A stretch of DNA of 64,000 nucleotides from Zygnema circumcarinatum SAG 698-1b (taxonomy: Eukaryota; Plantae; Zygnematophyceae). Of the stretch, positions 46,379-54,500 are shown piece after piece; the first letter of the stretch is position 1, and every line of letters begins with the position of its first letter. The translations under genes were made by a program, and so were the position numbers. The stretch is from NCBI GenBank assembly GCA_037447605.1, contig CM074804.1, positions 62,001 through 126,000 on the forward strand, read 5' to 3'. A model generated the notes under the pieces. The model searched no databases. It was not told the DNA's origin and worked only from the letters and a program-made list of their open reading frames with translations.

Positions 46379-47366
46379 CGAGGCGTAATGGCTTATCTTA
46401 TTTTCAGTACTTTGCTGTCAGTAGTCCTTGTGGGTGAGTCGATGCAACGTGGTGAAGTATGGTTGAGCATTCACTTTCTCTTCTGCACTAGCGAGGAACC
46501 CCCTGCCCTGCAAGGCTGAAACGTGACCCTCTATTTGGGAGCTATGGCTGATGCAATGCTGTTCCTCTTTGCAGGTCTTCAGTTTGGGAATCTTTTGTGA
46601 CTTCGTCGCGCCATAGGTCTTTTCGTTACTTCTGTACATGACACTTTGCCTTGTGCACATGTACAGGGCAATGCCCTTGTGCCTGTGCGCCTTGCTTATT
46701 GAGCAGTGCACTTGAGTTATTCGAGTTGTTTGCTTGGTCCTTTCATCCTGGAAAGAGGTTTGTCTAGAATCTGCATAGTCTTAAAATGCACTGAAGGTTA
46801 GCATGCACGGGATTGTGATGACCGAAGGAAAACATAAGGCGAAAAAGAAAAAAAATTCAAGCGTGTAACCAGGAAGAGTAATGACATTGTAAGGCATGCT
46901 GGAAGGTTTAAAAAATGCCTTTAAACTATTTTATGTGTTAAAATGCAAAGCAGTCGATTTCACGTCTATTTGAGAAATGAGTATGGCGAGGACTATTGCA
47001 TAATGCAAATGATGAGTAAAAAAAAACATATGCGTTCAGTATGTAGGGTGACGATTATAATGAAAAAAATGAGAGAGGGTCAATCATGGTAAGCAGCCTG
47101 ACACTATTGACAAACTCATTAATAAAAAACTACAAGTTGTTTCTCTGAAAGTAGCGAAATCTAAAAATGGAAAAGTGATTTAAAATTATGTATGTACACC
47201 GTCCTTATCTGTATAACCCGATGTTAACATTCTGCCCATTCTGCACACATCCTGAACTAAAGAGTACGGAAAAAACGTCTATGCCACTGTGGTTTTTCTG
47301 GCGAATAAAGCTGCTATGATATATAAGCTTTGAAAATTGGCTATTCACAAGAAAGGGAATGATGAG

Positions 47367-50300
47367 CTAGAGAAATGACGGCCCGCCACCAGCGTAGTAC
47401 CCGTAAGGGCCGTGATAAAAGTAACTGTAAATGAGCGCAGCCTGGTGCACCTGCTGCTGCGTTCCGGTCGTATGCATCAGCGACACCTGCCGCTCCGCCA
47501 TTGGCAGCGGAACTCCAAGTTGGTGAGTCCCCATGTTCAATTGGTTGCCCCAATGGGGCAGCCCTCCTGGTTGCGGCAACGCTAGCTGGGGGGCGGCCAT
47601 AGTTCCAGGTGCTCCAAGCAGGAGGCTTCCAACTGCACTAGAAGGTACAGACATTTGGGCGACCATCATATTGAAAGGGGACCCCATCTGAGGAAGGGCG
47701 AGGTTGGCAGGCGCCATGAGGTGCGGCATGACGATGGGAGACCCCTGCATGTGGAAGAGCAGGGTTCGGGAAGGATACGGCAAAGGATCAAAGGAGGCTT
47801 TTCGTTTACGCTGTCCAATCAGAATCATGCAGCTCGTGATGATTCTGTCAATGCTGGGGCGGCCAATTGCTTCAGCAGCCTGCAAGGAAGGTGGTGCGCA
47901 ACAGCTGAATGACGTCAGTCGAGTTCTAACTGGACGTTACTATGGCCTGCCTCTGTAGATAGGAGATGATTGTGGGTCCACAAACAAGTGAACTTACAAG
48001 AGAAATATTTAAACAAAGCAATGCAGAGAAACGAAGAAAAGGGACGAACAATTGAAGCACAGGTATGAGCGTGAAAGACCAACCTGCTGTGCCATTACGA
48101 CACCCTCCTGGATAGCCTTAGCATACAGGGGACACTCCAAACAGCCGGGGCGGCAATCTTCGTCCAGCTGTCGATATCCAGGTCTTCTAGGGCATCCTCT
48201 GTCCATCTTTCTCCTCAAAGCTGCGACCGCTTCTCGTATCCTTTGATCCTGCACGACAAGCTCTCTTGCATCCATCGCTGCCTGAAAGAGCAGCGACAGT
48301 CCTCGAAGCCAGGCTGCTCTCGCAACAGCCGGCCAACAAGAGTAGGCCACCTCTGCCAGCGCAAGTGCTCTCTCACTTGTCTCTAACCCGCGAGCAACGG
48401 TTTGCAGCTTTACACTGGCTGCAGGCCCAAGGTCCAGCCACACCTCTAAAGCCCAAAGCAGGTGGTCTCCCTCCATCTCCTCCATGTTATAAACATGAGC
48501 AAGAAGGACAGTTGCTGCCTCTGATGCCCGTTCTGGATCTAACTTCGACAAGGGCGAGGCTTTGGGTGTCAATTCTGAGCAGCTGCTTTCTCGAAGCCGA
48601 ATTTCTCCTCTTAAGCGGACACCACGGGACGTAGTTGCGGAGGCAGAGTCTATAATGTCAAAAAAGGGAGAAGCGAGTAAATTAGCAGGTGAACTGATAG
48701 TCTCCTCCGAAGCAGGAGAAGATGAACGACAAGCCGAGTTGTCGTTAATAGCTGCTGTAACGCGTAGGGCTAAACAGAAGATGACACACATCCGAGTTTC
48801 CGCATTTATGGGCCGGCTCGTTAGGAGGTCAACCAGGGCTCGGCCTGCATAACAATGTGTCTCAAGGAGAAAAGCTGCTGCCCAATCGAAGGCTGGGTCG
48901 TATCTCTTGAACTGTTCTGTTGTGACAAAGAGACGCCAACCTGGGCATTTGAAAAAGTCCCATCCTCCATATTGAATGCTCTGAAGAGCAAGTTCTCTAG
49001 CAAGAGATAGAAAGCCCAAGGATGTAAACCGCTCCCCAAGCCGGGCCACCCACTCGCGGTTCACATTGGGAGCAGCCAAAAGCCGTTTAAGTTTGGACAT
49101 GATCTCTGCTTCATCTTGCTTACCGCTCAGCCACCCTTCTACTATCAGGTCTCCACATCGGGAAATGCTTGGCTGCATGATTAATCGAGGTGCGTAAGCT
49201 CTTCTCCTGCGCTTACTAAGACGTTCATGAAACACCAACCAAGCAAGGCGTCCAGCTGCTTCAGCAGCACCTGCAATAGATAATCGTTCAGCAAGAGGCC
49301 AAATTTGTGAGAAGAAATTGGGTTTCACACGTAGAGCCCGTTCTATTCTGGATTGTCGTCGAATAGCTTCACTGATCACGTCTACAAGGAGGCTCGCTCT
49401 CTGGGAAAGAGGTTTTACACCGGGCTGAAACAATTGCTCAGCTACTCGACAAAATGACTGCTTTCCCGTTGCTCCTAAAGCTATAGCTGCAAGCCCAGCT
49501 CGAAAAGCCGCCTCCTTGAACCCGATTGCTCGCATGTCTTTCGCAAGCTGCACTGCCACAGTGGGTCGCAAGCTTCGCAAAACGCCAAGCTCCATGGCCA
49601 TCCAAACCGCAAGAAGTCCCCTGTTAATACTCACATCGTACACTCTATCTATCATCTCTGCTCTGCGCTTCTGAATAGGCTCTGTGAAGATAGCTTCAGC
49701 AGTGACCCATTCTGTTACCTCTCTTAAGCTCGGAGGAGGCCCGTAACTACCACCCATAGCTTGGACAACACCAACTGTGCTAAACAATCTAGCAGGCCTT
49801 CCAACACTACCCAAAACCGACTCACCTCTCTCTCCCACTATCTCCCCATTTTCTTCCTCTTCCTCTTCCTCTTCCTCCCCTTCCTCCTCTTCCTCCTCCG
49901 TATCGTTATCCTCCACGTCATCATCATCATCATCTTCATCCTCCTCTTCCTCTTCACCTTCCAGACTATCCGCCTCCATTCCCGACTGCCGCAGCATTCG
50001 TGAACACCAGACCGACGAAATATTAACAGTGCTGCTTATAACCGATGGCGCTTTAACCCCCTGCAGGATTGAAGCTAACACCTGCACCGCTGCAGCATCG
50101 CACAAAGCAAGTGTCTCCAACCCCCCTGCTTCACGAGTCTGCCACCGAGCGCCTCTATCTGACATCTGCATGGAGTCGAGAAGTTTCAAAAGCCATAAGG
50201 TTGCGCCACCTGGCAGTCTCTCACTTACTGTACACGCCATAGCGATATGCTCCACTACCTCCTGATGTCCCATACAAAATAGCACCTCTCCATCAATGCA

Positions 50301-50921
50301 GCTATGCATACTTTCCCCTAAGGTAGCCCCAAAGCCCCTCCCGACCTCTCCTCCTGCTGCCTGGCACTCCCAATGTCGCCGCCAACATGCCAGCTCAGCC
50401 TCAAAAATGTCCTTCACTCCTCCCCATTTCAACTCAGCGACCCGCTGCAAAATGACAGAAAGCTTCCACGCAAGCGTTTCGTACCCTCCGTCTGCGCCGC
50501 TTCTTCCTTCAACTCCTACTGCTACATTCCCGCTCCGGACAGGTAACCCCAAATCAAGCGCTTCGCGCATCAGCCTGCCAAGGGTCGCCATGTCGCGCAC
50601 CCGCTTCCCCCTCCCTGTAAGTAGAGCCTCCATGAGCATCTCCAGAAAGTGAGGAGCTCCGGCATCCCTTGACCTAACCATGGCTTCCGCGTCTGCGACG
50701 AGCCCGGACAGGAAAGTAGCCTCCGCTTCGGCGGCAGCTGTCGATCCGCCATGGCTTCCCTGACGCGAAAAGTTTGCAAGCTGGGAGAGGACTTCATGCT
50801 TCCTCAGCCGCCCAGAACCCGGCATGGCTCCTCCCACGAGCGAGGCATCTCCTTCTCTCCTCCCCGGCCTCCCTCTCCCGCTGTCCATGCTGCAAGCTTC
50901 GTCCTCTTGGCAAAATGCCAT
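47367..50921 (-). CDS. ~1,116-aa alpha-helical protein with ZSWIM4/5/6/8-like core; exons 48084-50921 and 47367-47879
   Basis: 971-codon open frame plus an in-frame GT-AG-spliced 3' exon. Colinear motifs match the recalled ZSWIM family (see findings). Central D/E tract, CxxGCxxCP near the C-terminus, M/P/Q-rich tail. Confidence 0.7.
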
Positions 50922-51539
50922 CACATTTCTAGCAGAATGTCACTATTTTACACACCAATCTGAGTATCTGAGCCTTCATTTTCTTACCATTACGTGCCAC
51001 AAAGCAAGGAAGAAACGACCACCTACATTCAATTCCAGATTACCTCAATGGGCTGACAAAAATTCACAAAAAGCAAATAATAGTGACCCGGGAGCCAGCC
51101 CTCCCCTCCCCCGCTGGCACTCGAGCGGGCACTCGGCTCTTAAGTAGACCTTTCGCAAGGACCGTCCGAAGGAAACGTTTAAAAGGACTCTTACCCATCC
51201 GCCCAACGGACGCTGTCATGGAGCGCAAGTGCCAGCGAATCGGTACGCGAATGAGGTACTCCCGGTACTGCACTGGCTGCTGACCTGGCCGTGCCTGTGC
51301 CATGCCCATCCATGCATGGCTATGACTGCCCTCCTGCCACGCCATGCAGCCTCCTCCCTCTCGCGCTGCGCCCGCGTCGACCCTCCCTCCCTCCCTCCCC
51401 TGCAAGCAGTTGCAAGCAGTGAGGGAGGAGAGAGGGGAGAGAGGCAGGAGGCGGCAGGCAGCAGCCGCCGGAGGCTTCAAACGACCACCGGCAGACAACC
51501 AGAGCGGGTGCTTCCTATTTTTCCGGCGGAGAGGACGCC

Positions 51540-54500
51540 ATGGCGGAGGCGGAGGTGCATCAGCTTGCAGCGTGCATCTCCTGCCACGCATGGAATGCCG
51601 ACTTTTCGCGTGTGCCTCCCAGCCTAAAGCCATGGAGTCGTGCCCTTAATCCCAAGAAAGCGGGAAAATCCTAGTGTTGCCAACATCTTAACAGCCATGA
51701 AATCAAGCAATGATCCTTAAAATCTTGAAATGATCGAATTCCTAAGGGTGCTGACTACCTTGAAATTGCAGAAACCATAAATATTTCGAAACTTTAAACT
51801 CCAAGAAGGGTTTTGCATTTACAGTCTGGGGAACCACAAATAGCCGGCATGTGCGGATGATCGCAAATATTTAAAAAAAACATGGAACCTTTAGAGAACT
51901 TGTAAACTTGTTCTAACTGCAGCTCAACCATCAGAATGAAACTAACGAGATGTACTCGAGAAATGGATGGGTTCAGTACTTGCGCTGTGCCCAAACAACA
52001 AGGAAGTACATATTTTTTCTGCCCCAAACTGGGAGCGGCAATATGTTTTAAGCAAGGTTTGGCATGGCTCCTTCCAAATGCCTAGACCATCCTATAAACG
52101 TTAACCGATATTTAAACTTTATGGCCTCAATCCATAAATAGTCTGAACATTGAGAAACTTAAAACTGGCTTGCTTGATCTTTCTTAGCAATGTGTTAACA
52201 GTAGGCTATGCCAGCCTCTGCAATTCATCGCAAATGGTTCATCGGGGATTTAGAACTGGCTTTGGAATTCTGCAAAGGGGAAGAAAATATTACTTTGACC
52301 CGTAATTGAAATTGATTGATTGATTGAATTTATTCTTATCCTAAGCTTTGTAAAATATCAACCTAAAATTTTAGCATTTATTCAAGATCTTTATGTCCTG
52401 CAGCACGACCAGCTCGTTTCTGGCATTGACTGGGCTCCGCAGTCCAACCGTATCGTCACATGCTCTCATGATCGCAACTCGTAATGTTTCTGACCTTGCT
52501 CAACACTCTTCCTTGCCCATCTCTCTCTAATCCCTCTCCTCGTCCCCGTCCCCGTCCCCCTTCCCCCTCCCCCTTCCCCCCTGTCCTTCCATGTTACGAG
52601 TAAGATTTCTTGATGTTGGATGCAGCTACGTGTGGCATATGGAGAATGGCCAATGGGAGGCCACTCTCGTCATTCTACGGATCAACCGGGCTGCTCTAAG
52701 TGTGGACTGGAGTCCTAAGGGTGAGCTTAAGTGCTTTCCTTGTTATCGGGAATGAGGTTTCTACAGCCAAACAGAGGTAATCCTGTAATGCTGGAGTTGG
52801 AGGAAGTATTCGTTGCTCAAATTCCATCAGTTATTCATTGTTCTTGAGGCAGAAAACAAATTTGCCGTCGGCAGTGGAGCAAGGAGCGTTTGTGTGTGCT
52901 ACTATGAGGCAGAAAACAACTGGTAGCCTTCTTAACCTCTTGCTCTAGGAGAAGATGGTAGATAAGGGGAAGGAGAAGGTGGAGGGACGGGGACGGGGAC
53001 GGGGAGGAGAAGTGGGGCTTTTGGAGAAGAAATCCATAGGCATAACGTTGTGAGAGAAGTAGGGTGGAAAAGTGGAGGCACGGTGAGGAATGGCGGAGGG
53101 AGACAGGTGGGAAGGTGAGGGTAACAGAGGGAGGCGGAAAGGTAAGTAAAGGAGGCGCGAGAAGGTACAAGAGAGGAAGGTGGGGGGATATGCAGAGTCA
53201 AAGAGAGAGAGGGGGAGTCTGTGAAGCGGCAGAGGAAGTTGGGGTGGGGGCTAGGTGGGTGAGCAAGCTGATAAAGAAGAAGCACTCCTCCTCCGTCACC
53301 AGCGTGGCCTGGCACCCCAACAATGTATGCGGCATAGCCCACTAATTACATCACTGTGGGCCTCTACTGCGATTCCATTGCACTGCAGCTGCCTATGCTC
53401 CCTTCCCCCTCCTTCTCTTCCCCCCCCCTCTCTCTCTCTCTCCCGCTCTTTCTCTCTCCCTTTCTCTCTCACACGCACGCTGTCTTTCTTCAGGTCAACT
53501 TCTCACCCCATGTCTCCATTCCCTGTTGGCTCTCCCTCTTCTCCTCTCCTCCCTGTCTCAGCTCTCTTTCTCTCACTTTCTCCAACCCCCATCCTCCCCT
53601 CCCCCTTCTTTCTCCCAATCCACTCTCTCCCTTCCGCCCCCTTCAATCGCTGCCACTGTTCTCTTTGACACTCTCTCGCTTGACTCCCTCCCCTCTTTCG
53701 CTACCTTTTTTCCATCGTCACCATGGTAACCTCGCCTCCCTTTCTTCGTAAACTTCAATTGATGGGAAGCAGGTAATGCTGGCAACCACCTCCACAGACG
53801 GAAAATGCCGAATTTTTGCAGCTGGCATTAAGGGCGTCGATTCCAAGTGAGCTTGTTACAAATACCAGATCCTTTTGCCGGAACTGAAAGCTACTCAAAG
53901 TCAACCCCTAAAGTTCGTATGGTGATACGCTTTACTCTCTGACATGTAAAAACCATGGAACTCATTATACCTTATGTTATGCCGATTTTCATTTCATGAA
54001 TGTATGCAGAGCAGACCATGCATCCCCTTTTGGAGAGAGCAAGTTTGGAGAGGTAATAGCCTTCCCAATTCTCCCTTCCGCGATGGCATGTTAAACTTAG
54101 GCGCAGTTCTACCTTGCGAAGACCTATACTTCAATCTATACCCCCTCCTCCCCCCCCCCTTCCCCCCCCCCCGGTTTTTTCTGTGCAGCAATTGCTCCAA
54201 TTAGATTTGGCGATGGGATGGACATTTGGGGCTCGCTGGTCACCTTCTGGAAATTCACTCGCATTTGTAGGTCAGTCCTTTTCCAAAAAAAAAAAAAAAA
54301 AAAAAAAAATTCCGAGGTTATCAACCCTGAAACCCAAAGACTGTAAAAGGCCAGGGAAAAGCTGTTTTGTTCTTACAACCTTAGCGTATATTAGTGAAAC
54401 TCAAATGAAACGATGGATCTCAAGTAGGGACTGAAAAGGTACCTCGCCCTTTTCCTGTTTTCCATGCTCACTGTCGTCCTTGTGGCTCCTCAGTTCCACG

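Follow-up and report, generated by a model that had tools for sequence, protein, structure and literature searches.

A two-exon gene next to ARPC1

The minus strand of the window, by which we mean the whole 64-kb stretch of streptophyte-alga DNA analyzed here, bears a gene with one exon of 946 codons and another of 170, just as the earlier note had read it; the coordinates and the spliced contigs agree on this structure. All features of the gene given below lie on that strand. The coding part of exon 1 occupies 48084..50921 (2838 nt, 946 codons without a stop), that of exon 2 occupies 47367..47879 (170 codons and a TAG), and a phase-0, GT-AG intron of 204 nt separates them (47880..48083). The computed chance of 946 codons being free of stops is ~2e-20. 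The intron is precisely skipped in contigs of the runs X14 and X17 and still present in a contig of X2; the neighboring gene is spliced in the same runs as the two-exon gene. The records of X14 and X17 carry no RNA label, and it is the spliced joints that provide the evidence for their transcript origin. The X14 contig is collinear with 47197-51144 and unspliced 5′ of exon 1, and one from X20 extends to 51246. Such transcript-type contigs delimit a 5′ untranslated region at 50922..51144 and, where the X14 contig ends, a minimum 3′ untranslated region at 47197..47366; in mapping them, 49843-49964 in the acidic tract was passed over as a repeat. The two-exon gene is real, transcribed and spliced.

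At its 3′ side (46572-47366), single contigs in X17 and X20 join the end of the gene to a convergent spliced transcript of a snoRNA-cluster region, which suggests that the 3′ ends of the convergent genes overlap; the transcripts stay separate in X14, ending at 46956 and 47197. On its 5′ side lies the divergent gene for ARPC1 of the Arp2/3 complex (51540-53345; E 3e-11 to ARPC1A), with confirmed splicing of its first intron (51610-51976). The ATGs of the two genes are ~620 nt apart (50922-51540), close to the ~600 bp previously estimated, and their transcript contigs nearly meet at 51144-51255, those of ARPC1 starting at 51255-51375. This interval is a compact bidirectional promoter.

Proteins of the ZSWIM4/5/6/8 family, to which the earlier note tentatively assigned the gene as an N-terminally truncated member, mark Argonaute, among other targets, to be destroyed; the ZSWIM4/5/6 group we take to be PTHR22619. 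An in-frame TGA (50942-50940) lies 7 codons upstream of the ATG, the 5′ leader has several short upstream ATGs, six in all, and two strong splice donors (51194 and 51043) and an acceptor (50929) in it look unused. Neither CxC nor CxH occurs in the protein of either exon, and the CxC..CxH finger that had gone unseen upstream is indeed absent from every frame of 50900-51620. A family profile of the BC-box, SWIM and D-domain found no match in the protein or among the ORFs of the window, and loose BC-like patterns are present solely within the helical body. The N-terminal truncation is thus supported by the in-frame stop, the collinear contigs and the lack of CxC/CxH, with the caveat that contigs lose rare isoforms. 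An upstream coding exon was also considered and rejected in view of the collinear transcript contigs and the upstream stop; 0 of the 12 listed hypothetical in-frame 5′ splices add a CxH.

Features of the protein and standard searches

The exon 1 product is predicted to be an all-helical solenoid. Near its start is a four-helix bundle (aa 39-125, 50547..50807), the sole part modeled at pLDDT 60-80, which putatively corresponds to the helices that directly follow the SWIM belt in the family and contains an M-x-R-x-R-D motif (aa 81-98, 50628..50681). Further along are an EH-x-x-x-AC segment (aa 216-236, 50214..50276), the best place in the protein for positions 477-497 of the ZSWIM4/5/6 profile (P 0.013), an acidic tract (aa 317-362, 49836..49973) with Asp or Glu at 34 of 46 residues, and a basic run resembling a nuclear localization signal (NLS) (aa 570-574, 49200..49214). 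A C-terminal block (aa 824-861, 48339..48452) aligns with profile positions 948-990, the start of the ZSWIM4-8_C region, and is followed by four cysteines spaced C-x12-C-x3-C-x2-C (aa 910-930, 48132..48194). This cluster is a possible metal site and not a SWIM finger; its end, RP-x-C-x-x-CP, resembles a portion of the iron-sulfur motif of endonuclease III, although the algal cysteines are spaced differently and the last one is missing. The product of exon 2 consists of a short helix, a basic patch and then a low-complexity tail rich in Leu, Gly, Pro, Ala, Gln and Met with a Tyr/Gly-rich end (47370..47759); its basic run (aa 24-27, 47799..47810) is likewise NLS-like.

The proteins of the two exons were searched separately. 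Pfam, queried with the whole proteins and pieces of them (about 20-22 queries), gave no match to ZSWIM4-8_C or TPR_ZSWIM8, both confirmed to be present in the library used, nor to the PPR, TPR and HEAT repeat families or any other model. A phmmer search against 1.84 billion protein representatives returned no ZSWIM and four matches, all on the acidic tract, which lies behind all the spurious database matches. No ZSWIM was matched among PDB sequences, ZSWIM8 included; the best such match of the middle part is a designed PPR protein (E 1.5e-4 summed over repeats). NCBIfam, a word search and the ESM Atlas features and structures were blank for the protein, as were the phage and plasmid collections and the search for related loci in metagenomes. 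The exon 2 product matched nothing in any library searched, pairwise BLAST to three ZSWIMs was not significant, and the 64-kb window holds no paralogue. Relatives in other algae or plants were not found either, in a collection from which an exact look-up showed the protein itself to be absent, so that little weight attaches to the absence of close relatives among algae. A prokaryotic source was considered and rejected: in 596 Gb of genomes the motif pattern had 10 matches, all of them unrelated and due to chance, and in viral contigs it had 0.

Comparison with the ZSWIM4/5/6/8 body

A wildcard DNA pattern made from aa 81-98 retrieved 43 metagenome loci, ~36 of them from one eukaryotic family, and the long loci are ZSWIM4/5/6/8 by Pfam. 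Because the wildcards had been chosen with the family in mind, there is some circularity in this retrieval, and we do not count it as evidence. Nine possibly human, vertebrate-type contigs (L001, L008, L010, L014, L021, L025, L031, L041 and L043) and unnamed proteins of uncertain origin were left out of the reference set; with the remaining loci as seeds, a protein search recovered 120 animal ZSWIM4/5/6 proteins. Two loci from plant-associated metagenomes, L018 and L033, carry divergent intronless ZSWIM4/5/6 genes that are probably animal rather than plant sequences, since one of their relatives is from Aceria, an eriophyid mite. In the metagenome contig L011, the frame of a ZSWIM8-type protein has a stop (1276-1278) where its relatives have Trp, reflecting either an error in sequencing or a genetic code that differs from the standard one.

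An HMM of 111 ZSWIM sequences scored the algal protein at P 0.017 (reversed control 0.08) and placed its ORF outside the top 8 among the 1902 ORFs of the window; the best hhalign block (P 0.19) equals the reversed control, and a mini-profile of ZSWIM8 only had no significant match. With profile chains allowing long gaps, 0/300, 2/600 and 1/500 shuffles scored as high (P 0.002-0.01, values that are optimistic because many parameter sets were tried), as did 0-1/400 real bacterial protein decoys, and the best chain works without the retrieval motif. Reversed ZSWIM decoys, which are deliberately hard, match the algal score in both the chain and the global tests. Block order reaches significance in a single setting (4/400) and stands at ~0.1 in another; global alignment reaches z ~2.4 against shuffles with no collinearity signal, the windowed best matches are not collinear (Spearman 0.14), and in mid-protein several mutually incompatible registers score equally well. 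The motifs that are best in the protein follow the order of the family (aa 39, 70, 216, 643, 836 and 850), and the exon 1 body measures 910 aa against a family median of 945.

The earlier note had proposed six motif pairs, and the algal motifs it quoted are all in place (aa 39, 214, 456, 644 and 675). When tested against a profile of tool-derived, non-human ZSWIM4/5/6 sequences, pairs 1-3 fall at their best place in the protein (P 0.021, 0.005 and 0.013), the LALQ pair is best-placed yet weak (P 0.30), and the AVQLAKD and AFDW pairs are unsupported (P 0.94 and 1.0). The C-terminal register proposed with them gives way to aa 824-861, which places better. Neither the sensor/TPR region (PF25572) nor the C-terminal domain (PF21055) has a Pfam match; for the former, the motifs at aa 39-103 are best-placed (P 0.005-0.02) and the structural register agrees, and for the latter, aa 824-861 is the strongest chain block (parts at P 0.025 and 0.094). 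On sequence alone, ZSWIM homology is suggestive, not proven.

Single-sequence models with pLDDT 42 (full exon 1) and 47 are all-helical and poor outside aa ~40-125. Unbiased Foldseek and wide VIA fold searches with them return generic TPR/HEAT/PPR solenoids. Human ZSWIM8 (9RWZ_M) lies within the Foldseek top 1000 of 350,542 chains for the full exon 1 model; it is not among the matches listed for the N-terminal model alone. In VIA it takes rank 48/955 at an unremarkable Z of 5.9 (rmsd 29.3, 200 residues aligned), the alignment spanning model residues 38-940 and ZSWIM8 289-1831. Its identity over these residues is 16%, a figure that could be affected if VIA draws on sequence signal; for the other 49 rows taken together it is 8.1% (binomial P 4e-4), and the 30 rows of at least 150 residues reach at most 11%, placing ZSWIM8 5 SD above them. 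The leucine of the W-x-L-D motif, which lies 103 residues past the first SWIM cysteine in the ZSWIM8-type protein (~ZSWIM8 290), pairs with algal L39; hence, the structural start fits the register of the sequence motifs. Because ZSWIM8 was fixed as the target beforehand, this match is the strongest single evidence, within the limits of a low-confidence model, a residue-level alignment that is not displayed and a Foldseek preselection that uses amino-acid similarity.

We accordingly consider homology to the ZSWIM4/5/6/8 body likely, though too remote for any standard profile search to pass its threshold: the family assignment of the earlier note stands as probable on the register and identity of the 9RWZ alignment, whereas the profile side of it (Pfam, phmmer and hhalign) drew a blank. 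The alternative that fares best is that of a lineage-specific orphan helical-repeat protein, whose ZSWIM likeness stems from the generic amphipathic pattern of solenoids and chance motifs. The blank standard searches, the equally good reversed decoys, the windowed matches without collinearity, the generic solenoids of the fold searches and the designed PPR protein as top PDB sequence match are all in its favor. However, it leaves unexplained both the outlying identity of ZSWIM8, sole among the 50 structural rows, and an end-to-end alignment that begins at the predicted residue, and we regard it as rather unlikely.

The missing ligase module and the proposed role

The E3 superdomain of ZSWIM8 comprises the BC/CUL3-box (71-111), SWIM domain (172-208), D-domain (225-268) and belt (269-290), with the belt ending and the sensor domain starting at 289-290; its activity requires the SWIM domain and dimerization, the monomeric form being inactive, and its TDMD sensor element (309-345) enters the PAZ pocket of Argonaute while HEAT repeats touch the N and MID domains (10.64898/2026.01.05.697729). 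ZSWIM4 requires its residues 1-99 to bind Elongin B/C (PMC10897318). The BC-box, CUL3/CUL2-box and SWIM finger are absent from the algal protein, and so are the D-domain and belt (ZSWIM8 225-290), as the alignment starts at 289 and just 37 low-confidence residues precede it. The spacing from the first helix to the RD motif is 42 residues in the alga, 35-37 in ZSWIM4/5/6 and 68 in the ZSWIM8-type protein, too short a stretch in the alga to accommodate the insert that senses Argonaute PAZ. With the E3 superdomain (71-290) and that insert missing, the earlier reading of the protein as a cullin adaptor in a small-RNA (TDMD) pathway is unsupported.

On balance, we favor the explanation that the gene, from a conjugating green alga (probably Zygnema), codes for a diverged, ligase-less ZSWIM4/5/6/8 body that acts as a client-binding solenoid. 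This highly diverged substrate-binding body would combine the sensor-type helical domain with HEAT-like repeats, having gained the acidic insert and low-complexity tail and lost the BC-box, cullin-box, SWIM and dimerization domains and belt. With the known route to Elongin C, a cullin and a ZSWIM dimer closed, it would be a monomeric alpha-solenoid whose repeats bind a client, either a protein or a ribonucleoprotein, without ubiquitylating it, in the role of a scaffold, chaperone or sequestering factor and not of a ubiquitin-ligase receptor. The two basic runs would make it probably nuclear, and the acidic tract and tail might engage chromatin or ribonucleoprotein partners, client and location both being conjectural. 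As the SWIM, BC-box and D-domain are all absent, we class it as a probable ligase-less variant and not as a member of the family in the functional sense.

We think it improbable that the protein is an ancient ZSWIM4-8 clamp kept by the sister lineage of land plants, cut from the ligase at a domain boundary and still binding a client (Argonaute complexes or some other), whether as a regulator free of the ligase or as one half of a split receptor; if so, the family would predate the animal-plant split. Less likely again is that the body operates in a cullin-RING ligase with the BC-box/SWIM module supplied by a separate polypeptide or a replacement adaptor, and in this way brings protein clients to ubiquitylation: the break at the ZSWIM8 289-290 domain boundary and the full-length substrate-binding part fit this, but no BC-box/SWIM/D-domain ORF exists within the 64-kb window and the belt by which body and E3 superdomain are tied together is absent. 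Least plausible of all is a plant-lineage counterpart of ZSWIM8 that recognizes complexes of Argonaute, small RNA and target and thereby speeds the turnover of small RNAs, since, despite the ZSWIM8-like features of the aa 81-101 motif and the HEAT repeats touching Argonaute N and MID that it would have kept, it has no room for the PAZ-sensing insert (42 versus 68) and no dimer domain in a family where monomeric ZSWIM8 is inactive, its match to the ZSWIM8-only mini-profile is not significant, and Arabidopsis relies on HAWAIIAN SKIRT (HWS), an unrelated protein of the F-box type (10.1101/2025.11.08.687406).

The ZSWIM4/5/6/8 proteins are regarded as belonging to animals, and our literature search found no paper linking ZSWIM to streptophytes or algae. 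A homologue in a streptophyte alga, if true, would mean that the family arose much earlier or was transferred in ancient times, and from a natural form without the ligase part one could learn what the solenoid is capable of apart from ubiquitylation; if the homology is wrong, the gene joins the other orphan helical genes that are expressed. Plant TDMD has been described as an independent, non-homologous invention (10.1101/2025.11.08.687406). HAWAIIAN SKIRT and FBW2, the Arabidopsis SCF receptors for AGO1, share with the algal protein only the hypothesized pathway, being F-box proteins unrelated to it in sequence and architecture. Generic TPR/HEAT/PPR solenoids share its predicted fold class and fill the fold-search lists at Z 6-9; unlike the ZSWIM8 row, they lack a register running from end to end, and their structural identities are 4-12%. 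ZSWIM8 (EBAX-1, Dora; PDB 9RWZ) can be structurally aligned from 289 to 1831, whereas the algal protein is ~700 residues shorter and without the E3 superdomain and the TDMD-sensor insert. In comparison with ZSWIM4/5/6 (PF21055, PF25572), the algal protein is without the BC-box, cullin-box, SWIM domain, D-domain and belt and escapes the Pfam models, and the acidic insert, cysteine cluster and low-complexity tail are additions of its own. The two are probably homologous in the body, both are all-helical and of similar body length, and the loop that joins the first two helices of the sensor region, putative in the alga, is short in both.
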